The notes under the pieces were generated by a model that saw nothing but the letters and a program-made list of their open reading frames with translations, had not been told where the DNA came from and searched no databases. From positions 266,025 to 330,024 of IMG/VR virus record IMGVR_UViG_3300042564_002819: a stretch of DNA of 64,000 bases; one strand, given 5' to 3'. This document shows positions 22,277-61,365 of this stretch, one piece after another; positions within the stretch are counted from its first letter, which is position 1, and each line of letters starts with the position of its first letter. A program made the translations under genes and the position numbers.

Positions 22277-22374
22277 TTTTTTCAAAAAAGATAAATAAAA
22301 CTAGTTGACAGATAAATAAAGTTGTAGTAAGTTACTACTATAAGTTTAAAACAACATAAGAAAGACACATTGTA

Positions 22375-22467
22375 ATGAAACTCGCATATGAACATAAGTT
22401 TATGATTAGAAGCATTGAAAAATGCCGCGAGTATCGCTATGGCGTCTCGGAGGGTTCAGCTGTATGA
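22375..22467 (+). CDS. Putative attenuator leader peptide 1 (30 aa) for tRNA array 1
   Basis: MKLAYEHKFMIRSIEKCREYRYGVSEGSAV; contains GGAGGGTT (22449-22456) complementary to the terminator 5' arm. Confidence 0.7.
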   Translation: MKLAYEHKFMIRSIEKCREYRYGVSEGSAV

Positions 22468-22493
22468 TGTGATTAACACACATATAGATTTAC

Positions 22494-22526
22494 AAACCCT
22501 CCAGTAGCAATACTAGGAGGGTTTTT
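22494..22526 (+). terminator. Attenuator terminator 1
   Basis: AAACCCTCC-AGTAGCAATACT-A-GGAGGGTTTTT. Confidence 0.85.
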
Positions 22527-22727
22527 CATTATGTGCATATAGGAAACGAGGTCCTACTCAAAGCACTTTAAAAAACAGAGAAACGGGCGGGCTAGTGGAT
22601 GAAATGACCGGAGATAACGGCAGAGTAAAATACTAGCAGGTAATAGTAAAGCACACTCGTTCTGCCGGGCTGCGAACCCGGAATTGGACTGCATAGCGGA
22701 GAGTGTGTTTCACTATTACAAATAATT

Positions 22728-22814
22728 GGTCGGTGGCCCGGATGGTAAGGGGATGGACTGCAACTCCATAGCACTGCACGACAGTAATCAGTTCGATTCT
22801 GATACCGACCTCCA
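22728..22814 (+). tRNA. tRNA-Cys(GCA), long variable arm
   Basis: GGTCGGT/ACCGACC, ATGGA-CTGCAAC-TCCAT, U73, CCA. Confidence 0.85.
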
Positions 22815-22819
22815 CAATT

Positions 22820-22896
22820 GGTGCCGTAACTCAGTTGGTCAGAGTGCATCGCTCATAACGATGAAGTCGGTGGTTCAAATCCACCCGGCACCACCA
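22820..22896 (+). tRNA. tRNA-Met or Ile2 (CAT)
   Basis: CATCG-CTCATAA-CGATG; CCA. Confidence 0.9.
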
Positions 22897-22901
22897 AAAT
22901 T

Positions 22902-22978
22902 GGGACATTGGACTTCTTGGCGAAGGTCGCCGCCCTTTCAAGGCGGAGAAACGGGTTCGAAACCCGTATGTCCTACCA
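22902..22978 (+). tRNA. tRNA-Glu(TTC)
   Basis: CCGCC-CTTTCAA-GGCGG; CCA. Confidence 0.92.
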
Positions 22979-23019
22979 AAATAGATCAAGCCTAGTCGAT
23001 CTCGAAAATCACTAGGCCC

Positions 23020-23089
23020 GCTCCTGAGGATCAAGCCATCGGAAGGTTCGAGACTTCCTTTGCAGGGTCGTCACCTGCCAGGAGTAACA
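23020..23089 (+). ncRNA. Degenerate tRNA-like cloverleaf
   Basis: GCTCCTG/CAGGAGT stem, GGAAG-GTTCGAGA-CTTCC, GCAGG-GTCGTCA-CCTGC; no CCA. Confidence 0.45.
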
Positions 23090-23094
23090 TACAT

Positions 23095-23179
23095 GGGAGA
23101 GACGCCTCAAGGTGAGGCAGTGGATTGTAAATCCATCGCGGCAACGCACGGACGGGTTCGATTCCCTCCTCTCCCACCA
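23095..23179 (+). tRNA. tRNA-Tyr(GTA)
   Basis: GTGGA-TTGTAAA-TCCAT; variable arm; CCA. Confidence 0.92.
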
Positions 23180-23185
23180 AAATTA

Positions 23186-23261
23186 GGGTCTCTGGTATAG
23201 CTGGTGCGTACGGCTGCCTGAAGAGCAGTAGGACACGGTTCGATTCCGTGGGGACCCGCCA
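23186..23261 (+). tRNA. tRNA-Phe(GAA)
   Basis: GCTGC-CTGAAGA-GCAGT; CCA. Confidence 0.9.
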
Positions 23262-23296
23262 AGAATTATACTACCATAAACACGAAAGAAAATAAA

Positions 23297-23443
23297 ATGA
23301 AACTTGATCCGGAAGAAAGAATCTTCTTGACTGAAGAAGAATTGAAGCGTATACATGATGCTTGTGCTAATCCACCGGAACCAACAGACTATGTAAGACG
23401 CTATATTAACGCATATAGGAGAAAAAATGAAACGAAAACGTAA
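23297..23443 (+). CDS. 48-aa protein resembling the C-terminal half of DUF1778/TacA antitoxins
   Basis: MKLDPEERIFLTEEELKRIHDACANPPEPTDYVRRYINAYRRKNETKT (not in ORF track). Confidence 0.55.
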   Translation: MKLDPEERIFLTEEELKRIHDACANPPEPTDYVRRYINAYRRKNETKT

Positions 23444-23470
23444 CGCAGAAGATTATGACAAACGCAACAT

Positions 23471-23546
23471 GGACCGGTAGCTGAGGTGGTTTTAGCACCC
23501 GACTTTTAATCGGAGTACGTGGGTTCGAGTCCCACCCGGTCCACCA
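23471..23546 (+). tRNA. tRNA-Lys(TTT)
   Basis: CCGA-CTTTTAA-TCGG; CCA. Confidence 0.92.
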
Positions 23547-23665
23547 TAGTTTTGATGATACACTGACGCCGCGTGGTTACGGCTATACAACTAGGCTTAT
23601 CGCAACCTAATAACCATAGAGGGTTGAGTCGAGGTTGAGCAGTGTATCTTTTAAACTATGAATAT

Positions 23666-23741
23666 TGTTCCATAGCACAACTGGTTAGTGCAGGCGACTG
23701 ATAATCGTCAGATCTGAGTTCGAGTCTCGGTGGAACAACCA
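23666..23741 (+). tRNA. tRNA-Ile(GAT)
   Basis: GGCGA-CTGATAA-TCGTC; CCA. Confidence 0.92.
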
Positions 23742-23762
23742 AAATTAGTAGGAAGACAGCCA

Positions 23763-23942
23763 GTGGAAGAACAGGAATATTACGCACCGTGGGAATGGCA
23801 GCCGATCGAATTCATGCCTAACGGATGTAATGATGTTGTTGTAAGAGACCGTGAAGGCAACACTCGAGAATTGTGTTCATGCGATTACTGGTGGTTGTCA
23901 GCAGAAGATAAAAAGATTTACACATCTTTTAGATTTGTGTAA
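23763..23942 (+). CDS. Small hypothetical protein
   Basis: GTG start after the tRNA, SD AGGA. Confidence 0.45.
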   Translation: MEEQEYYAPWEWQPIEFMPNGCNDVVVRDREGNTRELCSCDYWWLSAEDKKIYTSFRFV

Positions 23943-23954
23943 TTTTAACATAAT

Positions 23955-24029
23955 GCCGTGCTTGGTGTAAGGGTAGCATACCGCACTGTGACTGCGTTGG
24001 AATAGGTTCAAATCCTATACACGGTACCA
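23955..24029 (+). tRNA. tRNA-His(GTG), no G-1
   Basis: CGCA-CTGTGAC-TGCG; G1:U72, A73. Confidence 0.88.
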
Positions 24030-24041
24030 ATACAAATTTAA

Positions 24042-24635
24042 TTATTGTACTTTTTTACTTAATACTCTGTATATGTCGTTATAGTTATTTTTATATTTCG
24101 ACTCATTGACAATTTCGTAGTTATATAATTGGTTTAATACCTTTAAACCATGTATTCCATCTTTAGTATCTAATTGATTGCATGTACCTATTACATGATC
24201 TGACAATGACAAACTATAATCAAATAGTTCTTCCCAAGTATTATTATATGGATACAGTTCTATAATTACCATTTGATGTTTTTTAGTGTAATTAAAAAAA
24301 TCACATTTCATAGCTGTGATGTTTGGGTAGTTGTGCATTGTGTTAAACAGTGCTAGGGTGTTTTGTTTTTTTAAAAACTTATCCGCACAAGTCATCTTAT
24401 GAAGATCACGCAACTCTTCGTATGTTTCAATATAGTGAAACGTATCTATTGCAGTAACATGTGTCTTTGGAAATGAACGACAAATTGCCGCAGCAACTCT
24501 GCCGCCAAATGTGCCAGCACACAAAACGTCACGTATATCATTGTTTGATATATGATCGCAAATATTAACTATTTCCTCGTATCCAGTCCAATTTGGAAAG
24601 TCCATTAGTATATTATATTTGCTTTTATATGACAT
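24042..24635 (-). CDS. Class I SAM-methyltransferase-like protein
   Basis: VLCAGTFGGR...VTAIDTF. Confidence 0.55.
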   Translation of the reverse strand: MSYKSKYNILMDFPNWTGYEEIVNICDHISNNDIRDVLCAGTFGGRVAAAICRSFPKTHVTAIDTFHYIETYEELRDLHKMTCADKFLKKQNTLALFNTMHNYPNITAMKCDFFNYTKKHQMVIIELYPYNNTWEELFDYSLSLSDHVIGTCNQLDTKDGIHGLKVLNQLYNYEIVNESKYKNNYNDIYRVLSKKVQ

Positions 24636-25718: not shown

Positions 25719-25795
25719 GCTCTCGTAGCTCAATGGATTAGAGCGTCGGTCTACGAAACCGAAGGTTAGAGGTTCGAGTCCTCTCGAGAGTGCCA
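25719..25795 (+). tRNA. tRNA-Arg(ACG)
   Basis: TCGGT-CTACGAA-ACCGA; CCA. Confidence 0.93.
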
Positions 25796-25858
25796 AAATA
25801 CTAGTTGACACTGGCATAGACAAGTGTTATTGTGAGTGCAACAAGAAAGGAAATACAC

Positions 25859-26155
25859 ATGAATAAAATTCTAATTTCTGCACTTTTTGCCTTTGTTTCT
25901 ACTGCTGCTACTGCAAAAACAGTTTATTACCCCGAAGCTGCATGTAACGAAATTCTCAGCAGCGAATACAGCACTGGTGGGGGTGATTCCAGCTGGGAGA
26001 TGTACGAAATTCTTTGCCGTGACGCTAATGGAAAATACACTACCTTTGTTACCAGCTGGATGAGTGTTGCAGGGTTCTTTGGTATGGGTCGAGTTGCATA
26101 CGAAGAAACGATTGACCTTGTACCCTACAACGGTACTACATTGAAGGCTGAATAA
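25859..26155 (+). CDS. Secreted hypothetical protein
   Basis: Signal peptide; SD AAGGA; TTGACA upstream. Confidence 0.65.
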   Translation: MNKILISALFAFVSTAATAKTVYYPEAACNEILSSEYSTGGGDSSWEMYEILCRDANGKYTTFVTSWMSVAGFFGMGRVAYEETIDLVPYNGTTLKAE

Positions 26156-26156
26156 A

Positions 26157-26600
26157 ATGAAAATCGAATATCGTAAAGGCAACATGTTTGAAACTGACAT
26201 CCTGCATATTGCACATGGCTGCAATGCACAAGGTGTTATGGGATCTGGCGTTGCTAAGATTGTAAAAGAAGATTACTTTGATGCATATCGTTTCTACGCA
26301 GAACAGTACGACGAGCATGGACTTAAATTAGGAGATGTGCAGTTTGTTCCTGCAAACGGCAAAGTAATCATCAATGCTGTTACGCAGAATCTGTACGGCA
26401 AAGACGGTCGTCGTTTTGTTAATTACGAAGCAGTTGCAGAGTGCATGAGAACTATTAATAGTGTACTTAAGCAAAGTGGCGAAACTCATGTTGCTATGCC
26501 GCAAATTGGTGCCGGCCTTGGTGGCGGCGATTGGCGTGTGATTGAAGCAATCATTGAAAGCGAAATGACAGACATTCAACCTGTGGTGTATGTACTGTGA
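26157..26600 (+). CDS. Macrodomain (ADP-ribose binding/hydrolase) protein
   Basis: YRKGNMF, HGCNAQGVMGSGVA, MPQIGAGLGGGDW. Confidence 0.92.
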   Translation: MKIEYRKGNMFETDILHIAHGCNAQGVMGSGVAKIVKEDYFDAYRFYAEQYDEHGLKLGDVQFVPANGKVIINAVTQNLYGKDGRRFVNYEAVAECMRTINSVLKQSGETHVAMPQIGAGLGGGDWRVIEAIIESEMTDIQPVVYVL

Positions 26601-26771
26601 CAACACCCTTAGCAGATCAGAAGATATTCTCACTCAATGATCTCATTGAAATGGGTCTTATTACACGTAAACAGTTAGAAGATCACATCCGATACATGGA
26701 AGCAAAACAGTTAGTAAAAGAACTGTTTCCAGGAATGTTTTAAAAATAAAGAATAGGTAGCCGCGACTACC

Positions 26772-26903
26772 TTGGCTAGGAGACTATTTGCATTGTGCAT
26801 CGTGGGGCCTTTGTGTAGTAGACTGTTTCGTCTAACGGAGAGGACGCCGGTGGAGATCCGGAGATACAGGTTCGAGTCCTGTAGCAGTTTTGCTCCTAGC
26901 CAA
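26772..26903 (+). ncRNA. tRNA-like domain enclosed in a long stem (Y-RNA/YrlA-like candidate)
   Basis: TTGGCTAGGAG/CTCCTAGCCAA closing stem; inner cloverleaf with ACAGG-TTCGAGT-CCTGT. Confidence 0.5.
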
Positions 26904-26912
26904 AATAATTTA

Positions 26913-26988
26913 GCCTTCGTAGCTCAACTGGAAGAGCAAGGGATTTCTACTCCCTAGGTTGTGGGTTCGACTCCTGCCGGGGGCACCA
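26913..26988 (+). tRNA. tRNA-Arg(TCT)
   Basis: AGGGA-TTTCTAC-TCCCT; CCA. Confidence 0.92.
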
Positions 26989-27043
26989 AAAAAGCTGTTG
27001 ACACAGACTTGGCACTATGCTACAACAAGTTATTGAATAACAC

Positions 27044-27448
27044 ATGAGGAACACTGAGATGAAGACTGCTTACAAGAACCGTGACGGCGAATGGGTTGTG
27101 GCCGAGCAGATCAAGATGAGCCGGTATGACCTTGAAGGTTCGGTAGATTCGATTAAGGCTGCACTGGACGAGGTTCGCGACCGTGCTACCGCAATGGGTA
27201 TGGTGGGTGAAGGCACTGTTGACATCAGCCTGAACCGCGGCTTCTACTCGGACGACTACGAAATAGAAGTGGAATACTCCTTCACTCGGTATGAATACCC
27301 TGTGGAGATGGAGCGGCGTTTGGAGCGTGAGGCCAAGGATAAGGCTGCGGCTGCTGCCAAGCGTAAGGAAGCCGCCCAGAAGCGGAAACTCAAGAACGAT
27401 CCTGAGTATGTGGAGTTTGAACGGCTCCGGGCCAAGTTTGGTGGTTGA
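27044..27448 (+). CDS. Hypothetical protein (GC-richer, probably early)
   Basis: TTGACA promoter at ~26998; start may be ATG 27059. Confidence 0.7.
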   Translation: MRNTEMKTAYKNRDGEWVVAEQIKMSRYDLEGSVDSIKAALDEVRDRATAMGMVGEGTVDISLNRGFYSDDYEIEVEYSFTRYEYPVEMERRLEREAKDKAAAAAKRKEAAQKRKLKNDPEYVEFERLRAKFGG

Positions 27449-27504
27449 CAACACTCTCCTGCTGTGCTATAACAACAGCATAGGGCAACACGAGGAGAAA
27501 TCAA

Positions 27505-27852
27505 ATGCCTTGTAGAGTCAACGACGAAGACTGGAAACCGCGTAAAGAAACCCGCCACGGGATGGATATCGAATCTTTCGAAGCTACACTTTGCGGCGTC
27601 TTCACTGCTGCAGAGGAAGGCGCCTTTGCGCCTACGGTTGTTGGCGGAGTTGATGGCTTGCTGGATGTGATCGACTGGAAAGAAGCCGGAGTGAAACGCA
27701 AGACCGTTGAAGCATGGTGGAAGCGGCATAAGGCAGAAGATGCTGCCCGCCTTGCTCGCGAATCTGCTGAACGGCGTAAGGCTGAACTCAAGCGGATTGC
27801 GATCGGCAAACTCACTGCAGAAGAACTGGAAGTGTTGGGGATCAAACTCTAA
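27505..27852 (+). CDS. Hypothetical protein
   Basis: SD GAGGAG; TTGACA/TATAAC promoter. Confidence 0.75.
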   Translation: MPCRVNDEDWKPRKETRHGMDIESFEATLCGVFTAAEEGAFAPTVVGGVDGLLDVIDWKEAGVKRKTVEAWWKRHKAEDAARLARESAERRKAELKRIAIGKLTAEELEVLGIKL

Positions 27853-27923
27853 CACTTTCTGGTTGACATCCTACCTACACCGTGCTATGTATATTGTATA
27901 GGGCAACAAGAGGACAACCACAG

Positions 27924-28175
27924 ATGCCGAATCCTGCTACTGCTCCCCGTGACGAATTGAACGAGTTTACTCGCTCTGTATGGCTGCTTGGTAACAGCAA
28001 CTGGGGTAATCACGGTGTACGTCTTCGGAACGGGTTGATTGTCAAACCGATCTACAAGCCCGCAGAAGACGAGACCAGTGAAGATGCATTCTTCACCGAA
28101 GACTATGAATACTGCTGGAACCTGGACGGCACTTCGGTAACCCGCAGGGACTTTGATATGATGGAGATCGTGTGA
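27924..28175 (+). CDS. Hypothetical protein
   Basis: SD GAGGA; TTGACA upstream. Confidence 0.65.
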   Translation: MPNPATAPRDELNEFTRSVWLLGNSNWGNHGVRLRNGLIVKPIYKPAEDETSEDAFFTEDYEYCWNLDGTSVTRRDFDMMEIV

Positions 28176-28176
28176 T

Positions 28177-28584
28177 ATGATCAGAGACCTATTCGTTCCT
28201 GTGGCTGAACTGCTGTTCTGGTTCACCGGCGGAGAACTACTGCTGAATACCTGGTGGTTCTTTGTGTGGGTTGTTGGTGGTGCGTTCCTTGTAACCTTGC
28301 CGCTGTGGTTAGGTATGCGTCTGGCCAGACGTGGTAGTAACCTCAAGTGGATACCTGGCACACTCTTCCTAGTCGGCTTCTTCCCTGCCTTACTGCTGAT
28401 CACCAGCCCAGGCATCATCCAAGCCGACTTGATGGAAGAATGCCTACCCGTCCAGACCGTAACAGTGGATACCGCACAGGTCAAAGGTATTGAAGTTCGA
28501 GTTCGCCAGTGTCGCTTCAAGGCCAACTACTATGACAAAAATTATGGTGAATGGCAAGCCTGGGCGGTTGACCGGCACCAATAA
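28177..28584 (+). CDS. Membrane protein
   Basis: Two hydrophobic segments. Confidence 0.65.
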   Translation: MIRDLFVPVAELLFWFTGGELLLNTWWFFVWVVGGAFLVTLPLWLGMRLARRGSNLKWIPGTLFLVGFFPALLLITSPGIIQADLMEECLPVQTVTVDTAQVKGIEVRVRQCRFKANYYDKNYGEWQAWAVDRHQ

Positions 28585-28869
28585 CTGTATTATAAGCTGC
28601 ATAAGGAGAGACCGGCAACTTGTGTAGTGCATGTAGTGACGACTTGCGGATAACAGGTGGGATCGTGACATGTTGTAAATCTTTATGTAAGGGGTCGACA
28701 CTTTATATAGAGAGAACGCTGCATACGCTGTGGGACCTCGGCGTATCATTAAGGTGATCAAATCACGCAGGGGTAAAAGCCCTAATGAGGGGTCCTAGGA
28801 ATTAAAGGAAATACTGTGAGATATAGAAAGTTTTACGACGACTTCTAGGCTATAACCTAGGAGAATCAA

Positions 28870-29076
28870 ATGGCAAAATCACCTGTTTACGGCAGAGGCC
28901 GTAATCGTAAACATAGAGGGCACCGCGGCCCTGTTCACGCTGCGGCTGCTAACATCAATATGCGTGGCAAAAAAAGCAAACCTGACCACTGCTGGTGCTG
29001 TATTTGTATTGACATGCGTGAAGATATCTTGTATCGTATACACAAGAAGGAGATGAGAGATGAAAGAGACACGTAA
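28870..29076 (+). CDS. Small basic Cys-containing protein
   Basis: SD AGGAGA; CWCCIC. Confidence 0.6.
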   Translation: MAKSPVYGRGRNRKHRGHRGPVHAAAANINMRGKKSKPDHCWCCICIDMREDILYRIHKKEMRDERDT

Positions 29077-29584
29077 GTATCTAGTATTTTTAGACATTGA
29101 CGGCGTTTTTACTAGCTCTCGTGTTCACTTTGCACACGCTGCTGCTTATGAAATGTGGCACAGATTTGATCCTGTAGCAGTTGATTTTATGAACAAGATT
29201 CATGACAGATATCCTGTGGAGTTTGTGATCATGAGTACTTGGAAGGACAACCTTCGCAGTGACGATAACAACGTAAAACACTGGGTTCATGCTGCGTTTG
29301 GCAACAGTGGCTTTCGTGGGCAACTTGCTACACCTTGGAAAACAGATCCTGACAACGTCATCTGGCAGCGTAAAGGTGCAAATGATCGTGCCTACGAAGT
29401 AAAAGAATATTTAGAACTATACGCAACAGATATAAAAGATTACATTTTGTTTGATGATAATCGCTATCAATTCAAAGAAGTGCTAGGCGTTAATCGCCTA
29501 GTTCATACAGATCACGAAAATGGTCTGTTATACAAGCATATGCTAAATGCTCATAGTTTGATGGGACAGTGGCACGAGCGGTGA
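29060..29584 (+). CDS. HAD-superfamily protein (Swiss-Army-knife RNA-repair-like)
   Basis: VFLDIDGV, IMSTW, ILFDD. Confidence 0.8.
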   Translation: MKETRKYLVFLDIDGVFTSSRVHFAHAAAYEMWHRFDPVAVDFMNKIHDRYPVEFVIMSTWKDNLRSDDNNVKHWVHAAFGNSGFRGQLATPWKTDPDNVIWQRKGANDRAYEVKEYLELYATDIKDYILFDDNRYQFKEVLGVNRLVHTDHENGLLYKHMLNAHSLMGQWHER

Positions 29585-29616
29585 CATCGCTCGGAATAAT
29601 AACAAAGGAAACAGAG

Positions 29617-29826
29617 ATGACTAAAGAACAAGTTTTAAAATCGCTACCCACGTTTAAATTGCTGGCATGGGGAGAAACCGCAGAAACCAGCGGCAATGGA
29701 AAATATGTGCATTTTGATGCAAAAGAATCTAGTACACGTATCTTTACTATTGAAGCAATTCTTGCAGAACTAGATAAGCGTGACGACAATCCTAACCGAG
29801 ATTCTAGAAAAAAGAAGAAAAAATGA
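29617..29826 (+). CDS. Hypothetical protein
   Basis: SD AAGGA. Confidence 0.5.
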   Translation: MTKEQVLKSLPTFKLLAWGETAETSGNGKYVHFDAKESSTRIFTIEAILAELDKRDDNPNRDSRKKKKK

Positions 29827-29909
29827 TTAAGTTGCATATTGCTAATTTGGTTAATATTTTGTTATCCAAATTGCAAGAGATATTGTATAATAGATTAATA
29901 AATTAAAGT

Positions 29910-30482
29910 ATGTGTAAGTTAGTTTTTGTTTATAGTTCTATGAATTCCGGTAAAAGCCTAGCTGTTCTTACCAAAAATTATATGTTAAAAGAAAAAGGTT
30001 TTAAGACTGTGCTCATGAAGCCGGCAGTTGATACTAGGACTGCGGCAACTGTGGCTACACGCTTAGGCTTAGAAGAGCCCTGTGTTGTACTAGGAACAAC
30101 TGATTTGCCTAGTCATACTATACTAAAATCAGCACACGACAAGCCTGATTTTATTATTGTTGACGAAGCACAGTTTTTAACAAGCGAACAAGTTTGGGAC
30201 CTAGCTGGCTTAGTCGACAACTGGGGCATAAACGTGTATTGCTATGGTCTACGACTTAACTGGCAAGGAGAGTTTTTTACAGGATCGGAAGCACTGATGA
30301 AAATTGCTGATGTGCTAGAACCAATCGAAAACTTCTGTCAAATAAATAAAGGAGCACTAGCATTCTTTCATATTAAAAAAGCAGGTGGCGATAATCCTGT
30401 AGAAGTTGGAATGGAAGACATGTATGACACTGCGTCTAGAAAAGCCTGGAAGCAGTGGTATGACACAAAAAGGCCTCTGTAG
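29910..30482 (+). CDS. tdk: Thymidine kinase
   Basis: YSSMNSGKS, KPAVDTR, IIVDEAQFLT, YGLR. Confidence 0.92.
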   Translation: MCKLVFVYSSMNSGKSLAVLTKNYMLKEKGFKTVLMKPAVDTRTAATVATRLGLEEPCVVLGTTDLPSHTILKSAHDKPDFIIVDEAQFLTSEQVWDLAGLVDNWGINVYCYGLRLNWQGEFFTGSEALMKIADVLEPIENFCQINKGALAFFHIKKAGGDNPVEVGMEDMYDTASRKAWKQWYDTKRPL

Positions 30483-30548
30483 CTCAATGGATAGAGCAGC
30501 AGACTTCGAATCTGTAGGTTGGGCGTTCGAGTCGCTCCAGGGGTACCA
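30473..30548 (+). tRNA. tRNA-Arg(TCG)
   Basis: GCAGA-CTTCGAA-TCTGT; CCA; overlaps tdk stop. Confidence 0.9.
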
Positions 30549-30610
30549 AAATAACACTTGATCTCTTACTTTGCATAGTGTAAGCTGTAAGTATAGTAAA
30601 GGAGAATCAA

Positions 30611-30790
30611 ATGTGGAAACTTTATATTATGGAATCTGAACGCGGTTGGGGTCAACGAGTTGACGAAATACTAAAGTTCGACACGTATGAAGAGGCCGAT
30701 AAATACAAAAAAGAATTTAACAGTAAAAACAATCTTCCTGAAGTGCCTGATTGGTACATGTATGCAGATGGACCTGTTAAAGTAGATTAA
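30611..30790 (+). CDS. Small hypothetical protein (59 aa)
   Basis: SD AGGAGA; MWKLYIMESERGWGQRVDE...VPDWYMYA. Confidence 0.7.
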   Translation: MWKLYIMESERGWGQRVDEILKFDTYEEADKYKKEFNSKNNLPEVPDWYMYADGPVKVD

Positions 30791-30874
30791 GTCGCTGTGG
30801 TGTAATGGTAGCCACGACAGCTTGAGGTGCTGTTGCCGCAAGGCGTGGGAGTTCGAATCTCCCCAGCGACACCA
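30791..30874 (+). tRNA. tRNA-Leu(GAG)
   Basis: ACAGC-TTGAGGT-GCTGT; variable arm; CCA. Confidence 0.92.
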
Positions 30875-40389: not shown

Positions 40390-40422
40390 CATCTTTGATA
40401 AAAAGTGTATACTACAAACACT

Positions 40423-41797: not shown

Positions 41798-41843
41798 CAG
41801 CAGTGTCGATTCCTGTTACTTTGTTGCAAACATGGAGATCTAA

Positions 41844-55804: not shown

Positions 55805-55897
55805 ATGAACTTAACGAGTGCATCATCGCTAGTATGGACAAACGGATTACAAAATCCGGGCAATGATCTATGCTCGGAGGGTTATGGAAACGGTTAA
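55805..55897 (+). CDS. Putative attenuator leader peptide 2 (30 aa) for tRNA array 2
   Basis: MNLTSASSLVWTNGLQNPGNDLCSEGYGNG; SD AGAGGA; GGAGGGTT at 55876-55883. Confidence 0.72.
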   Translation: MNLTSASSLVWTNGLQNPGNDLCSEGYGNG

Positions 55898-55920
55898 CAA
55901 TGAGTTAACAAAAAATTCCA

Positions 55921-55956
55921 AAAACCCTCCAAGCAAGAAGCTTAGGAGGGTTTTTT
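55921..55956 (+). terminator. Attenuator terminator 2
   Basis: AAAACCCTCC-AAGCAAGAAGCTT-A-GGAGGGTTTTTT. Confidence 0.87.
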
Positions 55957-56677: not shown

Positions 56678-56753
56678 TCCTCGTTAGCTCAGTTGGTAGA
56701 GTATTTGACTGTTAATCAAAGTGTCGCTGGTTCGAGCCCAGCACGAGGAGCCA
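56678..56753 (+). tRNA. tRNA-Asn(GTT)
   Basis: TTTGA-CTGTTAA-TCAAA; CCA. Confidence 0.93.
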
Positions 56754-56822
56754 AAATTGAGAAGGGGATAAACACGGCAGTCTCATTGCGTAGCAACGGT
56801 GCCCTTTCTTTTAGAATAATGC

Positions 56823-56898
56823 ATCGGTATAGCTCAGCTGGTAGAGCAGCGGTCTCCAAAACCGCGTGTCCTGGGTTCGAATCCTAGTGCCGGTGCCA
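56823..56898 (+). tRNA. tRNA-Trp(CCA)
   Basis: GCGGT-CTCCAAA-ACCGC; CCA. Confidence 0.93.
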
Positions 56899-56905
56899 AA
56901 AATAC

Positions 56906-56997
56906 GGATTGATGGGTGAGAGGCTTAAACCAGCAGATTGCTAATCTGTCGTACCTTGTAAAGGGTACCGAGGGTTCGAATCCCTCTCGATCCGCCA
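56906..56997 (+). tRNA. tRNA-Ser(GCT)
   Basis: GCAGA-TTGCTAA-TCTGT; long arm; CCA. Confidence 0.93.
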
Positions 56998-57008
56998 GAA
57001 TAAGATAC

Positions 57009-57083
57009 GGGCTGTTGGTATAGTTGGGAACACAGTAGCTTTGCAAGCTTCAATCACCGGTTCGAACCCGGTACGGTCCACCA
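57009..57083 (+). tRNA. tRNA-Ala(TGC)
   Basis: G3:U70; AGC-TTTGCAA-GCT; CCA. Confidence 0.9.
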
Positions 57084-57142
57084 AAATAATGCGGGATTAA
57101 CTCAGTGGTAGATAAATACTTTAAATAGGAGATACTCTACCA

Positions 57143-57556
57143 ATGGCTAAAACGTTCAACTGTTTAAATTGTAGTAAAGAAAGTAAATGGAGTTATAGCA
57201 GCACTAACAAGTATTGCAGCGGCGATTGCTTTCAAGAACACAAATGGAAAACTGTAAAAAAACTTGAAGTAGAAGCAGGGTTAGTCAATGACGGAAGCCC
57301 TGCGTTAAAAAAATACCTTGTTGAAACAAAAGGTGAATGCTGTGAAGAGTGCAAAGTTGGCACTGTTTACAACGGAAAGCCATTAACACTAACTGTTGAT
57401 CATATTGATGGTAATAGTGATAATAACTTTCCAGGCAACCTTAGACTTTTATGTCCTAATTGTCACAGTCAAACTGAAACATACAAAGGACGAAACAAAA
57501 AGAATAGTGCTCGTTCTCGATATATGAGAAAGTATAGAGATAATTTGCGGAATTAG
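57143..57556 (+). CDS. HNH homing endonuclease
   Basis: CEEC...LTVDHIDGNSDNN..NLRLLCPNCHSQT; SD AGGAGA. Confidence 0.92.
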   Translation: MAKTFNCLNCSKESKWSYSSTNKYCSGDCFQEHKWKTVKKLEVEAGLVNDGSPALKKYLVETKGECCEECKVGTVYNGKPLTLTVDHIDGNSDNNFPGNLRLLCPNCHSQTETYKGRNKKNSARSRYMRKYRDNLRN

Positions 57557-57621
57557 CTCAGTGGTAGAGCAGGGGTTTTACACACCTCAGGCCGGGAGTT
57601 CGACCCTCTCATTCCGCACCA
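57547..57621 (+). tRNA. tRNA-Val(TAC)
   Basis: GGGGT-TTTACAC-ACCTC; CCA. Confidence 0.9.
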
Positions 57622-57732
57622 AGTTTAGACTGGATATAATCACCCCTTGTGAGGGTGGCCCAAGGACTCAGTAACGAGATACAGCGAAGGGTTGTTGGTC
57701 AAGGCTGCAAACAGCCCAGTCTAAAGCAATAC

Positions 57733-57821
57733 GGACACTTGGCAGAGATGGATTATTGCACCGGTCTTGAAAACCGACGAACCGCAAGGTTCCCAGGGTT
57801 CGAATCCCTGAGTGTCCGCCA
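57733..57821 (+). tRNA. tRNA-Ser(TGA)
   Basis: CGGT-CTTGAAA-ACCG; long arm; CCA. Confidence 0.92.
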
Positions 57822-57897
57822 TAAGCACACTAGCATCAGGCTAGTCCAGACCGTAAGGTTAACGGTGACAAGCGGGGAGAGACCCGCACAAAAATAC

Positions 57898-57974
57898 GGC
57901 CTGTTAGTCGAGTGGTTTAAGATGCCTGCCTGTCACGCAGGAGATGATGGGTTCAATTCCCATACAGGTCGCCA
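57898..57974 (+). tRNA. tRNA-Asp(GTC)
   Basis: CCTGC-CTGTCAC-GCAGG; CCA. Confidence 0.93.
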
Positions 57975-58126
57975 AATTGAAAGGAAGGCTCATAGTTTAC
58001 GTTTAGCCCGTTACGACGGTTTGGGCGGAAAATGGTTGAGTCACGGCACGGGCGGGTCGGGGGCTGCGTGACGGCATTGAACTATGAAGCAGTTGTCGGT
58101 CTGCGTTAACAAACACCGTCAAAATT

Positions 58127-58200
58127 GCGGGTATGGTGTAGCGGTAACATGCGAGCCTTCCAAGCTCTTGTCACGAGTTCGAATCTCGTTACCCGCTCCA
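58127..58200 (+). tRNA. tRNA-Gly(TCC)
   Basis: GAGC-CTTCCAA-GCTC; U73; CCA. Confidence 0.93.
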
Positions 58201-58225
58201 ATTTATCCGTATGTGAGAGGACAAT

Positions 58226-58492
58226 ATGAAAACAGAAGATGAAAAGAGAGAATTTTACGAGCGTTGCTCCTCTATGTTAGGAATAGCTCACGTTTACAAC
58301 ACGCCAGTTCCACGACGCAATAGATGGAACGCAAGACGACTGGGCAACGGACGTTATCCAGGATTTGGACTAATACAGTGCTACGGAAACGGAGCAAGAG
58401 TAGTTAGTCGACAAGGAACACGTATGTTTTATACATACGAAGCAGTTTATGAATATTTGCAGATTGTGCTTGACGCAACTGCAAAAGCGTAG
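58226..58492 (+). CDS. Hypothetical protein
   Basis: SD GAGG; RWNARRLGNGRYPGFG. Confidence 0.7.
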   Translation: MKTEDEKREFYERCSSMLGIAHVYNTPVPRRNRWNARRLGNGRYPGFGLIQCYGNGARVVSRQGTRMFYTYEAVYEYLQIVLDATAKA

Positions 58493-58507
58493 TATAAAAA
58501 CTATAAC

Positions 58508-58583
58508 GCCCTTATAGCTCAGCTGGTAGAGCATCTGATTTGTAATCAGAGGGTCGGCGGTTCAAGTCCGTCTGGGGGCACCA
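58508..58583 (+). tRNA. tRNA-Thr(TGT)
   Basis: TCTGA-TTTGTAA-TCAGA; CCA. Confidence 0.94.
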
Positions 58584-58590
58584 AAATTAT

Positions 58591-58666
58591 GTCGCGTTAG
58601 CAAAAGGTTAATGCGTGTCCTGTGCAAAGGACAAGGACGGTGGTTAAACTCCCCGACGCGACTCCA
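58591..58666 (+). tRNA. Atypical tRNA, Cys(GCA)-like, 8-nt anticodon loop
   Basis: GTCGCGT/ACGCGAC, U73, CCA; TGTCC-TGTGCAAA-GGACA; bulged T-stem. Confidence 0.55.
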
Positions 58667-58672
58667 AATAAT

Positions 58673-58754
58673 GCGGATGTGGTGTAATGGTAGCCACGCT
58701 GGTCTTAGAAGCCAGTGCGTAAGCGTGAGAGTTCGAGTCTCTCCATCCGCACCA
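58673..58754 (+). tRNA. tRNA-Leu(TAG)
   Basis: CTGGT-CTTAGAA-GCCAG; CCA. Confidence 0.92.
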
Positions 58755-58798
58755 AAATATTTCTTATCTTAAAAAGTTTTAAATTTAGAAAGATTAAC

Positions 58799-59242
58799 AT
58801 GCAATTTTATGAAAAAGTAACTTTTTTACCAAGCATTCCAGAAGGTTTAATAAAACCTTTAGATATAATCGAATCGATGCCGAATGTTTTTCCAGATCCG
58901 GATTACGCTCATACTTATGCCAGCTATAAGGCAAATGACGATTTACAAGCTTGGGCACAAAGTTATTTTGACTTTCCTGTACTTGCAAGATATCAGGTAA
59001 TTAAACAACAATTGCCTATTCATGTTGACGTTGGAATTGTAGGAATAAAATATAACTACCTTATTAGCAGGGGTGGTGACGATGTAAAAACAAGATGGTG
59101 GGATAGTGTAGAAAATCCTTCAAAAATACTTTTTGAAACTACTTCGCCATTACGTGTGTGGCACAGCTTAAACATCGAAGTGCCACACGATATAACAGAA
59201 ATTAGTTATCCTAGAATTAGTGTAACTATAAGAAAAAAATAG
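58799..59242 (+). CDS. Hypothetical protein, possibly cupin/2OG-Fe(II)-like
   Basis: PIHVD...PHDI...RISVT; ATG after the tRNA. Confidence 0.55.
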   Translation: MQFYEKVTFLPSIPEGLIKPLDIIESMPNVFPDPDYAHTYASYKANDDLQAWAQSYFDFPVLARYQVIKQQLPIHVDVGIVGIKYNYLISRGGDDVKTRWWDSVENPSKILFETTSPLRVWHSLNIEVPHDITEISYPRISVTIRKK

Positions 59243-59270
59243 TAATAACTTTTTTAAAGAAAAATACTGT

Positions 59271-59346
59271 TGGGAAGTAGCTCAATTGGTAGAGTAGCGG
59301 ACTTTGAATCCGTTGGTTGGTGGTTCGAATCCACCCTTCCCAGCCA
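59271..59346 (+). tRNA. tRNA-Gln(TTG)
   Basis: GCGGA-CTTTGAA-TCCGT; U1-A72; CCA. Confidence 0.93.
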
Positions 59347-59352
59347 AGATAT

Positions 59353-59429
59353 CGGAGTATAGCACAGCCTGGTAGTGCGATGGTTTTGGGTACCATAGGT
59401 CGAGGGTTCGAATCCTTCTACTCCGACCA
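59353..59429 (+). tRNA. tRNA-Pro(TGG)
   Basis: ATGGT-TTTGGGT-ACCAT; CCA. Confidence 0.92.
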
Positions 59430-59646
59430 CGATTAAACTGTTGATCTAACCTCGGACTCGAACAAATAGCCATAGGCTTAGGCAGGTAGTACGGCGGATT
59501 AGTGTTAGACAACATTCGGACCAAGTAATCCGTGAGGTCCAGCTATTAGTGATGGCGGGGACGAACAAGCGGCTGATTTGGTATCAGTCGTGAGGCGGTA
59601 AGCTGCACCATAGGTGTCGTAGGCCGGGACTTGTTCAATTTATTAT

Positions 59647-59724
59647 CTGGGTATAGCTCAGTCTGTGAAGAGTGCTCGCCTTGGAAGCGAGAGGTCGCTG
59701 GTTCAAATCCAGTTACCCAGACCA
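59647..59724 (+). tRNA. tRNA-Pro(TGG), second copy
   Basis: CTCGC-CTTGGAA-GCGAG; CCA. Confidence 0.88.
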
Positions 59725-59731
59725 AAATAAC

Positions 59732-59806
59732 GCGGTGTTGGACAAGATGGATTGTCAGAGGATTCTAAACCTTAGTAGGCAGGATCGTTACCTGTACGCC
59801 GCACCA
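59732..59806 (+). tRNA. Atypical tRNA with CTA (amber-suppressor) anticodon
   Basis: GCGGTGT/ACGCCGC, A73, CCA; D-stem GACA/TGTC; TT-CTA-AA at canonical 32-38; T-loop ATCGTTA. Confidence 0.6.
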
Positions 59807-59889
59807 ATACACACATATGATGCCGTAGCCCGACGCTGGTATGTGTGAAACCTAAATATCGGGCATGTAATTTAATAAAGGAAAGAAAA

Positions 59890-60456
59890 ATGTCGTAGAT
59901 TGAATATGCTTGTAAAGATGTGGTGTTCCACTTTAACAAAAAACACTTGGAAGATGAAACTATTCCGATGTGGGTGATTAAGTTTCGAGGCGAAACCTAT
60001 TATGTAAATCATGTCGAATGTAGTGTTCCGTGGAGTACAAAAGAAACGCCTGATAACAATCACACTAAAGGCAGTATCAAAGTCAAGGATTGTTTAGTTA
60101 TTATTGATGATGAGAACTGTGCTAACATTCGTGTGTTAACTCCAGCAGATCGTTTGCGTCTTACTAAAGAACAAACTGTAAGAGTTATTACCGAGCAAGG
60201 AGCAAAACTGCGTACTGCACTACAGAACATGGCACATGGTCCGATTAAGTTAGCAGGTGGAGGATGTGGCACTACTTGGTATATCACAGATATTCCCAGT
60301 AAGAAACATTTAACAATACTACAACTACAGATTCCTTATATTAGGCAATTGATGCCCAATGAGGATTATTACAAGAAATATGATCAAACATCTTCAGATA
60401 CTGAATGGTTAGATGATGATGACGACTACGAGTGGGAAGACCTTTATGAAAATTGA
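59890..60456 (+). CDS. Hypothetical protein; probable true start 59890 with in-frame TAG at codon 3
   Basis: SD AAGGA; ATG TCG TAG ATT GAA TAT GCT TGT AAA GAT GTG, in frame with track ORF 59920-60456. Confidence 0.65.
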
Positions 60457-60625
60457 AGTGCCTCACTCGTTACTAAAAGAAGTCTGTGCTACAATTCGTC
60501 AATTCAAATTAAGGCACGGGCCATTCTACAAACTGTTAAATAGCTATAGGATATATTTGTATCCAAGTAGTAAATTAAGTTTGTTTTTGATTAAACATTC
60601 TAGCACTGTTACAGTGCTAGAATAA
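60446..60625 (+). CDS. Small hypothetical protein
   Basis: ORF overlapping the upstream stop. Confidence 0.45.
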   Translation: MKIEVPHSLLKEVCATIRQFKLRHGPFYKLLNSYRIYLYPSSKLSLFLIKHSSTVTVLE

Positions 60626-60626
60626 T

Positions 60627-60701
60627 GCGGGCGTAGCTCAGGGGTAGAGCGTCACCTTGCCAAGGTGAATGTCGTGGGTTCGAATCCCATCGCCCGCTCC
60701 A
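60627..60701 (+). tRNA. tRNA-Gly(GCC)
   Basis: TCACC-TTGCCAA-GGTGA; CCA. Confidence 0.95.
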
Positions 60702-60719
60702 ATTGTTGAAAGATATTGT

Positions 60720-61301
60720 ATGAGTAAAATAGAGCACTTTTATCATCTTCCGCACTTCGAAGAAGAATGGTTTACATATTCGGCTTTATATTCTGATATG
60801 GTAGCTAAATTTCCATCCGGAAGTAAGTTTGTTGAAGTCGGTTGTTGGAAGGGAAGATCTGCTGCTTATATGTGTGTAGAAATTGCTAATTCAAAAAAAG
60901 ACATTGATTTTTATTGTGTTGACTTTTGGCATGTATCAGCAGAGCATGAAATAGAAGAACCCCATCTAAAAAATTTGTATGAAATTTTTCTTTCTAATAT
61001 GAAACCAGTTGAAGCTTTTTATAAGCCAATGAAAATACCGTCGTCTGATGCTGCAAAAAAATTTAAAGACGAAAGTTTAGATTTTGTTTTTATTGATGCT
61101 GGACATCAATACGATGAAGTAAAAGATGATATTCTTGCATGGTATCCAAAAATTAAAAAAGGTGGCATACTAGCAGGACATGATTTTTATCCAACTGAGC
61201 CAACTTGGGGAGATGTTTCTAAAGTAGTAAACGAACTTTTTCCAAATAATTATGAAGTTTTAATAGAACAAAGTTGCTTTCTAGTAAATAAGCCGGTATA
61301 G
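60720..61301 (+). CDS. Class I SAM methyltransferase (Methyltransf_24-like)
   Basis: FVEVGCWKGRS, DFVFIDAGHQY, GGILAGHD. Confidence 0.88.
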   Translation: MSKIEHFYHLPHFEEEWFTYSALYSDMVAKFPSGSKFVEVGCWKGRSAAYMCVEIANSKKDIDFYCVDFWHVSAEHEIEEPHLKNLYEIFLSNMKPVEAFYKPMKIPSSDAAKKFKDESLDFVFIDAGHQYDEVKDDILAWYPKIKKGGILAGHDFYPTEPTWGDVSKVVNELFPNNYEVLIEQSCFLVNKPV

Positions 61302-61365
61302 CTGAGTGGTTTAGCAGCTGATTAGTAATCAGCTGACGGGAGTTCGATTCTCTCTACCGGCACCA
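61292..61365 (+). tRNA. tRNA-Thr(AGT), unusual A34
   Basis: GCTGA-TTAGTAA-TCAGC; GCCGGTA/TACCGGC; CCA. Confidence 0.88.

Follow-up and report, generated by a model that had tools for sequence, protein, structure and literature searches.

Codon-listing leader ORFs within predicted attenuators precede the tRNA arrays of a large phage

Transcription of a number of enterobacterial amino acid operons (trp, his, leu, pheA, and the multivalent thr and ilvGMEDA operons) is controlled by leader-peptide attenuators, in which a short translated leader contains regulatory codons, the 5' arm of an intrinsic terminator can instead pair with a segment at the end of the leader ORF, and the position of the ribosome decides which fold forms; trp- and his-type leaders sense one amino acid, and the thr and ilv leaders sense more than one. 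The pheST operon of E. coli, with its pheM leader, extends this control to a component of the translation apparatus, since it reports the availability of charged tRNA, but it senses one tRNA species and controls a synthetase rather than tRNA genes. T-box riboswitches also regulate translation-related genes by antiterminator versus terminator control that reads the state of a specific tRNA, but they bind the uncharged tRNA directly through a specifier codon and the T-box sequence, need no translation, and read one tRNA per element. A supernumerary, horizontally mobile tRNA array that is silent by default and is switched on when decoding fails has been described in Anabaena sp. PCC 7120 (the tRNA L-array operon; PMC8421152); it is a cellular array rather than a phage one, and that paper mentions no leader, attenuator or terminator. 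Finally, phage tRNAs can counter tRNA-targeting defences (eLife 2023, PMC10264068; PARIS AriB, PMC12409363), in that defence nucleases cleave host tRNAs and phage-encoded tRNAs restore decoding; these papers concern tRNA sequence and resistance, and neither describes a sensor that controls phage tRNA expression.

We examined a 64,000-nucleotide stretch (the window) of IMG/VR record IMGVR_UViG_3300042564_002819 (positions 266,025 to 330,024), which carries two tRNA arrays. A first-pass annotation of the sequence had proposed that array 1 is preceded by a leader-peptide attenuator whose codons list the tRNAs of that array, comprising a 30-codon ORF, an intrinsic terminator, and a copy within the ORF of the terminator 3' arm, GGAGGGTT, that could act as an antiterminator strand. 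Every sequence element it named is present where it had placed it, and the observation therefore stands, in a stronger form than was first reported. The ORF runs from an ATG to a TGA, and 19 of its first 22 codons specify M, K, Y, E, H, F, I, R or C, while N, T, W, Q, P and D are absent. The array-1 tRNAs are as had been listed, including Leu(GAG); the Tyr tRNA was missed by ARAGORN at default settings but was found by Rfam and by relaxed ARAGORN. At the codon level, 19 of codons 2–22 are decoded by array-1 anticodons, the other two (GCA and AGC) are decoded by array-2 tRNAs, and 11 of the 12 distinct array-1 anticodons have a cognate codon in the leader. We also found a twin leader, not described in the first-pass annotation, in front of array 2. 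It has the same GGAGGGTT/AACCCTCC/GGAGGGTT triplet and an essentially complementary codon set, with 13 of 14 array-2 anticodons represented, so that together 24 of 26 anticodons have a codon in their own leader; Arg(TCG) and Thr(AGT) do not. Coordinates of all of these features are collected in Table 1.

Table 1. Positions (numbered from the first nucleotide of the window) of the two leaders, their predicted RNA switches and the tRNA arrays.
Position	Strand	Feature	Details
22305..22333	+	sigma-70-like promoter of leader 1	TTGACA (22305-22310), 17-nt spacer, TAAGTT (22328-22333); read from the sequence, function not shown; the homologous leader in family locus L109 has TTGACA-17-TATAAC at the same place
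22375..22467	+	leader ORF 1	30 codons, MKLAYEHKFMIRSIEKCREYRYGVSEGSAV
22378..22440	+	sensing codons 2-22 of leader 1	19 of 21 decoded by array-1 tRNAs; 11 of 12 array-1 anticodons represented
22449..22502	+	antiterminator hairpin 1	GGAGGGUU (22449-22456; GGAGGGTT in the DNA) pairs with AACCCUCC (22495-22502); inner hairpin 22460-22487 contains the stop codon 22465-22467
22494..22526	+	intrinsic terminator 1	AAACCCTCC..GGAGGGTTT plus U run; as RNA, AAACCCUCC-AGUA-gcaa-UACU-a-GGAGGGUUU followed by a U run
22728..24029	+	proximal part of array 1	tRNA Cys, Met(CAT), Glu, Tyr, Phe, Lys, Ile, His
25719..30874	+	distal array-1 tRNAs interspersed with ORFs	Arg(ACG) 25719, Leu(GAG)-like 26820, Arg(TCT) 26913, Arg(TCG) 30473, Leu(GAG) 30791; sharing of the leader-1 transcript is inferred only from the leader holding CGC, AGA and CTC
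55805..55897	+	leader ORF 2	30 codons, MNLTSASSLVWTNGLQNPGNDLCSEGYGNG; 19 of codons 2-22 decoded by array-2 tRNAs, none by array 1; TTA (twice) by no phage tRNA found
55876..55930	+	antiterminator hairpin 2	GGAGGGUU (55876-55883) with AACCCUCC (55923-55930), extended by UGGAA:UUCCA; an inner hairpin covers the stop codon
55920..55958	+	intrinsic terminator 2
56678..61365	+	array 2	tRNA Asn, Trp, Ser(GCT), Ala, Val, Ser(TGA), Asp, Gly(TCC), Thr(TGT), an odd tRNA, Leu(TAG), Gln, Pro x2, Gly(GCC), Thr(AGT)

We performed the following analyses to ask whether this arrangement could be fortuitous. GGAGGGTT occurs six times in the window (0.93 expected; 0 of 100 shuffles reach six), and all six copies lie in the two leader regions. 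The leader-by-array 2x2 table [[19,2],[0,19]] gives Fisher p = 1.6e-9. Codon enrichment by itself is not unique, since a few low-complexity protein segments and antisense frames in the window also reach at least 19 of 21, and we therefore do not take it as proof; however, none of those segments covers every amino acid of an array, lies upstream of an array or carries the motif, and our argument rests on full coverage, position, the motif and the family described below. The property of spelling out the whole array, tested leader by leader, is only moderately significant (P about 1e-3 each).

Folding of the leader RNAs, which had been named beforehand as a way to check the proposal, gave the two alternative structures. 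Both terminators are minimum-energy stem-loops followed by U runs (z -5.1 for terminator 1), and they were missed by a simple terminator scan only because the stem encloses more than 8 nt. The antiterminator forms whenever the terminator 3' arm is absent and the 5' strand is free. GGAGGGUU lies 8–12 nt before the stop codon, and the stop codon is within the antiterminator 5' arm, where a terminating ribosome would mask that strand. In classical attenuators a 1:2 pause or anti-antiterminator hairpin gives termination when the leader is not translated. Here the minimum-energy fold of leader 2 pairs its start region with the GGAGGGUUAUGGAAA segment, but leader 1 shows no such pairing, so the two leaders give no single answer as to whether this hairpin is part of the design. 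The elements are not sequence members of the Rfam leader families (His_leader, Trp_leader, Leu_leader, Thr_leader and Phe_leader). Only tRNA matches reach the Rfam gathering score in the window and in nine related loci; leader 2 gives a sub-threshold His_leader match (24.3 bits against a gathering score of 49, E 0.19), leader 1 gives nothing at E up to 1, and there is no T-box match around either leader even at E up to 1, the elements being built around an ORF.

A search of IMG/VR with the pattern GAGGGT..ACCCTC..GAGGGTTTT gave at least 120 loci, and 100 of 123 matches lie within 1.5 kb upstream of same-strand tRNA arrays; in bacterial and archaeal genomes only 1 of 120 matches does. Of the IMG/VR loci, 98 have an ATG ORF of at least 12 codons that ends within 40 nt of the motif start. 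A Shine-Dalgarno-like site is found in 41% of family leaders against 10% of controls, and many others have a -10 box abutting the ATG; the Shine-Dalgarno sequence of leader 1 is weak (AGAAAG). The first-pass annotation had stated that its idea would fail if the leader codons of homologs did not track the content of their arrays, and we find that they do track it. In 30 leader clusters, recall, precision and Jaccard index of leader amino acids against the own array are 0.96, 0.75 and 0.69, compared with 0.80, 0.61 and 0.50 for shuffled pairings (z 8.2, 7.8 and 9.3; 0 of 20000 shuffles) and 0.67, 0.54 and 0.45 for out-of-frame translations of the same bases. An earlier version of this test had used a rule that reads GAG GGT in frame, which miscalls some leaders (L046, for example, had recall 0), and the values given here use a frame-neutral rule. 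Family members were found through the stem sequence, so the sample is biased; in addition, leader and array are inherited together, so that the permutation p-values overstate independence, and many arrays are cut by locus ends. Codon choice within amino acids that have several isoacceptors also fits the anticodons of the own array (202 of 266 against 166 expected, z 5.2).

Other features of the family point in the same direction. The leader ORF occurs in all three frames relative to the motif, so the RNA rather than a peptide is conserved. The three codons just before the motif match the array less well than the rest (47% against 71%, p 0.001), as is expected if a ribosome stalled there would itself cover the switch. 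The antiterminator helix extends beyond the hexamers forced by the search and covaries, with 81.5% of cells paired against 73.9% when shuffled and 55% when slid by one column, and a covariation score of 0.214 against 0.121 (0 of 500 shuffles). The L109 homolog differs from leader 1 at six residues, and five of these swap one array-1 amino acid for another. Loss of Gln from both leader and array in locus L002 is suggestive only, because that array is cut 1.2 kb after its last tRNA. Among cultured phages, Xanthomonas phages X1 and BUDD have the same layout with a different stem, CUGGGU/ACCCAG/CUGGGUUUUU, upstream of a full-set array (candidate leader at OQ427096.1 136059-136178, terminator near 136200-136240). 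We found no close relative among cultured phages: megablast of 22200-24100 returned only a tRNA-Glu match, distant blastn with four family leaders (L006, L001, L096 and L058) returned no leader match, and tblastn with the 1019-aa protein showed only remote jumbo-phage similarity. A generic detector that requires the three stem segments (as exact 7-mers) plus an ORF recovered both window leaders but missed X1, whose stem has a G-U pair, and found nothing in a T5-like Klebsiella phage tRNA region; the element is therefore not universal, or the detector is too strict.

These findings are best explained, with a probability that we put at roughly 0.7, by a ribosome-mediated transcription attenuator in front of each tRNA array. 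In this view transcription starts at a promoter just upstream of the leader ORF, whose codons 2 to about 22 are a near-complete list of the codons read by the downstream tRNAs, and whose last few codons and stop codon lie in the 5' arm of a long antiterminator hairpin; the 3' strand of that hairpin, AACCCUCC, is also the 5' arm of the terminator. A ribosome that runs through to the stop codon would unwind and cover the 5' arm, leaving AACCCUCC free to pair with the downstream GGAGGGUU, and RNA polymerase would terminate before the tRNA genes. A ribosome held up at any listed codon because the matching charged tRNA is scarce would allow the antiterminator to form first, and polymerase would read into the array. 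The result would be an OR-gate over all tRNA species of the array, with negative feedback, since once phage tRNAs accumulate the leader would be read quickly and transcription shut off. The interpretation offered in the first-pass annotation, a multiplexed sensor of tRNA depletion, is thus supported as regards the competing folds, the codon list and its tracking of array content in related phages. Our analysis, which is entirely computational, demonstrates the sequence elements, the alternative folds, the family and the covariation between leader and array, whereas translation of the ORF, its coupling to RNA polymerase, the response itself (read-through under limitation of a charged tRNA was not measured) and the natural trigger are inferred. 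Candidate triggers are host tRNA cleavage by defence nucleases, starvation, phage-induced loss of host tRNAs, or codon demand that exceeds supply; the window also encodes an Rnl1 ligase, kinase and HAD RNA-repair set, the pathway that T4 uses against anticodon nucleases.

There is no experimental evidence of any kind for this model, and some observations fit it less comfortably. The Shine-Dalgarno sequence of leader 1 is weak, and only 41% of family leaders have a clear one. Each codon appears only one to three times, unlike the runs in the his and phe leaders, so sensitivity to mild limitation should be low, and each leader holds two codons that its own array does not read: leader 1 holds the array-2 codons GCA and AGC, and leader 2 holds TTA twice, for which no tRNA-Leu(TAA) was found. 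A consensus promoter-like site (56103-56131) and a 44-aa ORF lie between the terminator and the first tRNA of array 2, and the distal array-1 tRNAs are separated by ORFs and promoter-like sites, so the attenuator may control only part of the tRNA output. Compared with the enterobacterial amino acid leaders, the genes regulated here would be tRNA genes rather than biosynthetic enzymes, the leader lists up to 20 different codons once or twice each instead of runs of one to three kinds, no clear 1:2 hairpin is seen for leader 1, the stop codon sits inside the antiterminator 5' arm, and the element belongs to phages.

An alternative that we consider unlikely, though it is the strongest of the rivals, is that the element senses translation activity in general: the antiterminator would be the default fold, any translating ribosome would switch it off, and the array would come on whenever initiation or elongation is globally impaired (by host shut-off, abortive-infection toxins or ribosome shortage, for example), with codon identity mattering little. 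The antiterminator does form co-transcriptionally when no ribosome is present, no convincing hairpin sequesters GGAGGGUU in leader 1, so that without translation the default would be read-through, single or double sensing codons give weak codon-specific sensitivity, and the Anabaena L-array is induced by general translational stress (PMC8421152). This idea does not explain, however, why leader composition tracks the array at the amino acid and isoacceptor level across about 30 clusters, why two leaders in one genome split the 20 amino acids exactly as the arrays do, or why substitutions between homologs stay inside the array's set.

It is much less likely that the ORFs encode functional micropeptides or arrest peptides beside ordinary terminators, with the match to the arrays a by-product of shared codon bias. 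The largest leader cluster does keep a KHLPLLSGW core and many leaders end in E-G-F/S/Y, but peptides from different clusters are unrelated, out-of-frame translations lose the signal, and the opposite compositions of two leaders in the same genome rule out genome-wide bias; the E-G motif was rejected as a conserved peptide feature once leaders in the other two frames were found. That a chance ORF merely adjoins a terminator that ends the upstream operon or insulates the array is already contradicted by the comparative data, given the uniqueness of the motif in the window, the association with arrays in viral but not genomic matches and the covariation tests, even though small ORFs and terminator-like hairpins are common and our detector found 42 ATG ORFs among 120 chance matches of the RNA pattern in bacterial genomes.

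We found no prior description of such an element in the literature searched, which did not include most subscription journals and so is not proof of novelty; ribosome-mediated attenuation itself is long established, and what appears to be new is its inferred use on tRNA genes with a leader that lists their codons. It is more likely than not, though short of certain, that this is a widespread and so far undescribed class of phage riboregulator, with at least 37 leader clusters in IMG/VR, in which the leader reports, codon by codon, whether the cell can decode what the downstream array supplies and gates transcription of that array by antitermination. It would be the first case of tRNA genes controlled in this way, a supply-and-demand or damage sensor that lets phages express replacement tRNAs only when host tRNAs fail, for example after anticodon-nuclease defence. 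The cultured phages X1 and BUDD offer an entry point for experiments. In practical terms, and provided that the mechanism is as inferred, the leader sequence would predict which tRNAs belong to one transcription unit, its recognisable signature would allow phage tRNA operons in metagenomes to be annotated, and the element would be a compact, modular sensor of the availability of chosen tRNAs that could be re-coded for synthetic biology. If it works as inferred, it would show that tRNA supply can be regulated by direct read-out of decoding speed, would add a multiplexed OR-gate design to the textbook attenuation mechanism, would tie phage tRNA arrays mechanistically to tRNA-targeting bacterial immunity, and would answer a long-standing question about phage tRNAs, not only why phages carry them but when they use them.

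The region upstream of array 1 reads as the first-pass annotation had described it, with a short ORF, an intrinsic terminator whose 3' arm repeats a motif found near the end of that ORF, and tRNA genes downstream that match the ORF's codons; the observation therefore stands. The ORF is preceded by a sigma-70-like promoter, and the whole leader folds far better than shuffled sequences (-55.9 kcal/mol, z -5.1), with the terminator, a strong stem-loop followed by a U run, in the minimum-energy structure. The downstream tRNAs are Cys, Met(CAT), Glu, Tyr, Phe, Lys, Ile and His, then Arg(ACG), a 72-nt Leu(GAG)-like gene, Arg(TCT), Arg(TCG) and Leu(GAG); tRNA-Tyr was found only by Rfam or by ARAGORN with relaxed settings. 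With standard wobble rules, 19 of codons 2-22 of the leader are read by these tRNAs, the other two (GCA and AGC) are read by array-2 tRNAs, and 11 of the 12 distinct array-1 anticodons have a cognate codon in the leader, only Arg(TCG) being missing.

Positions in the window of the leader elements and of other features mentioned in the text
Feature	Position	Detail
Sigma-70-like promoter of leader 1	22305-22310, 22328-22333	TTGACA, 17 nt, TAAGTT
Leader ORF 1	22375-22467	30 codons, MKLAYEHKFMIRSIEKCREYRYGVSEGSAV
Motif in leader 1	22449-22456	GGAGGGTT, 8 nt before the stop codon
Inner stem of antiterminator hairpin 1	22460-22487	contains the stop codon
Terminator 1	22494-22526	5' arm AACCCTCC, 3' arm repeats GGAGGGTT, U run
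ATG after terminator 1	22531	followed by only three codons
Conserved block in spacer	22581-22637	between terminator 1 and tRNA-Cys
Structured element	22979-23094	between tRNA-Glu and tRNA-Tyr
Leader ORF 2	55805-55897	30 codons, MNLTSASSLVWTNGLQNPGNDLCSEGYGNG
Motif in leader 2	55876-55883	GGAGGGTT
Terminator 2, shared strand	55923-55930	AACCCTCC
Terminator 2, second motif copy	55945-55952	GGAGGGTT
Region between terminator 2 and first tRNA	55960-56670	44-aa ORF, promoter-like site, unassigned sequence
Promoter-like site before array 2	56103-56131	consensus-like
Odd tRNA gene	58591-58666	six-base anticodon loop, GCA-like
Odd tRNA gene	63704-63777	eight-base loop
Odd tRNA gene, Ser(ACT)	55105-55194	upstream of leader 2
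Leu(GAG)-like gene	26820-26891	72 nt, no encoded CCA; an odd tRNA gene
RNA-repair genes	41276-43534	HAD (Swiss-army-knife RNA repair) phosphatase, AAA_33 kinase and T4-type Rnl1 ligase in a row
Second HAD_SAK_2 gene	29060-29584	inside array 1
Macro-domain protein	26157-26600	inside array 1
ADP-ribosylglycohydrolase	40405-41316	
NAD salvage pair	48891-51772	NMNAT-NUDIX and NAMPT
Sigma-70 region 1.1/KOW protein	37330-40389	1019 aa
CHASE2-nucleotidyl cyclase	9927-11966	

A second 30-codon ORF with the same arrangement of motifs precedes array 2. Its codons 2-22 use only amino acids served by array 2 and cover all eleven of them (S, N, W, A, V, D, G, T, L, Q, P); at the codon level 19 of 21 are read by array-2 tRNAs and none by array 1, while TTA, which is used twice, has no phage tRNA that we could find. 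Thirteen of 14 anticodons are represented. Together the two leaders list all 20 amino acids, split as the arrays split them, and Leu is even split by codon, with CTC accompanying Leu(GAG) in array 1 and CTA accompanying Leu(TAG) in array 2. The leader-by-array table gives a Fisher p of 1.6e-9, and GGAGGGTT occurs six times in the 64-kb window (0.93 expected) and nowhere except in these two elements. Enrichment alone is not unique in the window, since S/T/G-rich protein segments and some antisense frames also reach 19 of 21; however, none of these covers a full set, carries the motif or sits before an array. The grouping of Cys, Met, Glu, Tyr, Phe, Lys and Ile tRNAs (plus His and Arg) in one array recurs across unrelated contigs (for example IMG/VR loci L001, L008, L009, L087 and L093), and the partition of tRNAs into arrays is therefore itself conserved.

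We next examined the proposed RNA switch by folding the leaders with parts left out or masked, an approach that had been put forward beforehand as a test. When the terminator 3' arm is left out, as during transcription, GGAGGGUU pairs with AACCCUCC in both leaders and closes a long hairpin whose inner stem contains the stop codon (GGUUAAC..GUUAAC in leader 2). When the first 12 nt or so after a stop-codon-bound ribosome are masked, only the terminator can form. The two terminators differ in their apical stems by compensatory changes (AGUA/UACU against AAGC/GCUU). After the leader-2 terminator comes a 44-aa ORF whose ATG lies 10 nt after the GGAGG of the terminator 3' arm, so its ribosome-binding site would be exposed only on read-through; this ORF is followed by the promoter-like site and then by about 500 nt of unassigned, apparently structured sequence before the first tRNA. 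Leader 1 has an ATG at the same distance. Array 2 is thus separated from its attenuator by an ORF and a consensus promoter-like site, and the distal Arg and Leu tRNAs of array 1 likewise lie among ORFs and promoter-like sites. In the 200-nt spacer between the leader-1 terminator and tRNA-Cys, one block of unknown function is 81% conserved in L109, the homologous IMG/VR locus.

A search of IMG/VR for related elements showed that they form a family. The exact triplet pattern found 14 loci, every one immediately upstream of a tRNA array; two of them lie on one 330-kb contig that carries both of the window's leaders identically and is probably the window's own genome. A looser pattern (GAGGGT, 25-55 nt, ACCCTC, 6-24 nt, GAGGGTTTT) gave at least 120 loci, and 100 of 123 matches have a same-strand tRNA array within 1.5 kb downstream. 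The same pattern in 596 Gb of bacterial and archaeal genomes also gave at least 120 matches, at about the number expected by chance, and only 1 of those 120 has any tRNA downstream; the association is therefore not produced by the pattern. The family was nevertheless ascertained through its stem sequence, and a T5-like phage tRNA region showed no such element with our strict detector. Five loci fetched through an unrelated anchor, a conserved structured element of about 110 nt between tRNA-Glu and tRNA-Tyr, also carry the motif about 400 nt before their arrays. This anchor element is present in 9 IMG/VR contigs (among them L009 and L015-L019) and consists of a hairpin plus a 66-nt cloverleaf-like, tRNA-like fold with a non-canonical T loop and no CCA; it matches no Rfam family.

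A failure of homologous leader codons to track array content had been named in advance as grounds for rejecting the hypothesis, and we found that the codons do track it. For example, MTGTKRVIWGIVR precedes Trp Met Ile Lys Lys Arg Arg Arg Val Thr Ile Gly, an Asn-rich leader (MRTINLNMINVNNTLNTVMVLNTLCIRHS) precedes Asn Asn Ile Arg Ile Thr Leu Cys Val Val Leu, MRNFLSYYPTLNLTLTQEQLPCGVS precedes Cys Thr Gln Pro Gln Leu Leu Leu Pro Tyr Glu Leu, and leaders holding 19-20 different amino acids precede full-set arrays. With a frame-neutral rule (the longest ATG ORF ending within 40 nt of the motif start), 98 loci yield a leader, in 37 clusters at 50% peptide identity, of which 30 have at least five tRNAs. 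Recall (array amino-acid types present in the leader) is 0.96 for the own array against 0.80 for shuffled pairings (z 8.2), precision (leader residues served by the array) is 0.75 against 0.61 (z 7.8), and the Jaccard index is 0.69 against 0.50 (z 9.3); none of 20000 shuffles reaches the observed values. Leaders and arrays are co-inherited, so these permutation tests overstate independence; even so, at least eight different partial-array compositions are each matched by their leader. Translating the same nucleotides in the other two frames gives 0.67, 0.54 and 0.45. Within amino acids that have several isoacceptors, 202 of 266 leader codons are decodable by the array's own anticodons, against 166 expected from local codon usage (z 5.2), which points to matching at the level of the tRNA rather than of the amino acid. 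Finally, the homolog of leader 1 in L109 (MKLVIKHMFEIRSIEKCREYRFGVSEGLRN) differs at six sensing positions, and five of these exchange one array-1 amino acid for another.

Other features of the family fit a ribosome-operated switch. The ORF occurs in all three frames relative to the conserved RNA motif (for example ..HERVF*, ..VRVRQVN* and ..SEGFGK*), and the stop codon is always 0-9 codons after the motif; the constraint is therefore on the RNA and on where translation ends, not on a peptide, although the largest leader cluster keeps a KHLPLLSGW core. The three codons just before the motif match the array much less than the rest (47% against 71%, p 0.001), as expected if a ribosome stalled there would itself occlude the antiterminator strand. 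The sequence between the two antiterminator strands folds better than shuffles (mean z -2.3, p 6e-20) and extends the helix. On an alignment of 33 distinct members, the 12 pairs not forced by our search pattern raise pairing to 81.5% of cells, against 73.9% in shuffles and 55% after a one-column slide; there are 45 double-change cells against 19.8, and the covariation score is 0.214 against 0.121 (0 of 500 shuffles). The bases next to the hexamers also covary (UU:AA in 25 members, UC:GA in 7), and many terminators share a GAUGAAAGUC apical loop. Leader 1 has a weak Shine-Dalgarno sequence, while many family leaders (for example in loci L055, L058, L036, L049 and L086) have a TATAAT-like box only 6-10 nt before the ATG, which suggests leaderless mRNAs.

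A cultured example with a different stem was found through tRNA-Ile similarity, not through the motif. Xanthomonas phage X1 (OQ427096.1) has an unannotated 39-codon ORF, MKTILLTSKNWHQVAALAVKPADERYVAGFDLNTGYGMS, with 19 amino-acid types, whose end lies in a CUGGGU..ACCCAG antiterminator (-23.2 kcal/mol, z -3.8) followed by a terminator, ACCCAGGAACU-GAAA-AGUUUCUGGGUUUUU. It lies about 330 nt upstream of a near-complete tRNA array, and phage BUDD keeps the ORF length, the stop position and the switch at 88% identity. The design is therefore not tied to the GAGGGT sequence, and it exists in phages that can be grown.

The element would work like the trp, his, thr and ilv attenuators and meets their structural criteria, with the exception that the anti-antiterminator feature is uncertain; we see no clear one for leader 1. 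An untranslated leader 1 would therefore read through, and this keeps alive a reading in which the element is a general sensor of translation. It is not a sequence member of any Rfam leader family, and it is not a T-box. Full-text literature searches found no description of leader-peptide control of tRNA genes in phages or bacteria. The nearest biological parallel is the stress-induced Anabaena tRNA array (PMC8421152), a report that does not mention a leader or attenuator.

The comparative evidence supports the mechanism proposed in the first-pass annotation, and the most likely reading is classical ribosome-mediated attenuation applied to tRNA genes. In this view, a ribosome that reaches the stop codon unwinds and covers the antiterminator 5' arm, the terminator then forms and the array stays off, whereas a ribosome delayed at any listed codon leaves the antiterminator intact and polymerase reads into the array. 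This mechanism is inferred from sequence throughout; translation of the leaders, its coupling to transcription and the response itself are untested. The window also encodes an Rnl1 ligase, a kinase and two HAD RNA-repair phosphatases, consistent with a phage exposed to tRNA-cutting defences; this is the pathway T4 uses to mend nuclease-cut tRNA. The Macro-domain protein, the ADP-ribosylglycohydrolase and the NAD salvage pair are likely counter-defence or metabolic functions, and the protein that combines sigma-70 region 1.1 with KOW motifs and the CHASE2-nucleotidyl cyclase are both unusual for a phage. Once the phage tRNAs accumulate they should speed leader translation and close the loop, and the single-copy codons suggest a response to severe depletion of a tRNA species rather than to mild starvation, which would fit cleavage by defence nucleases.
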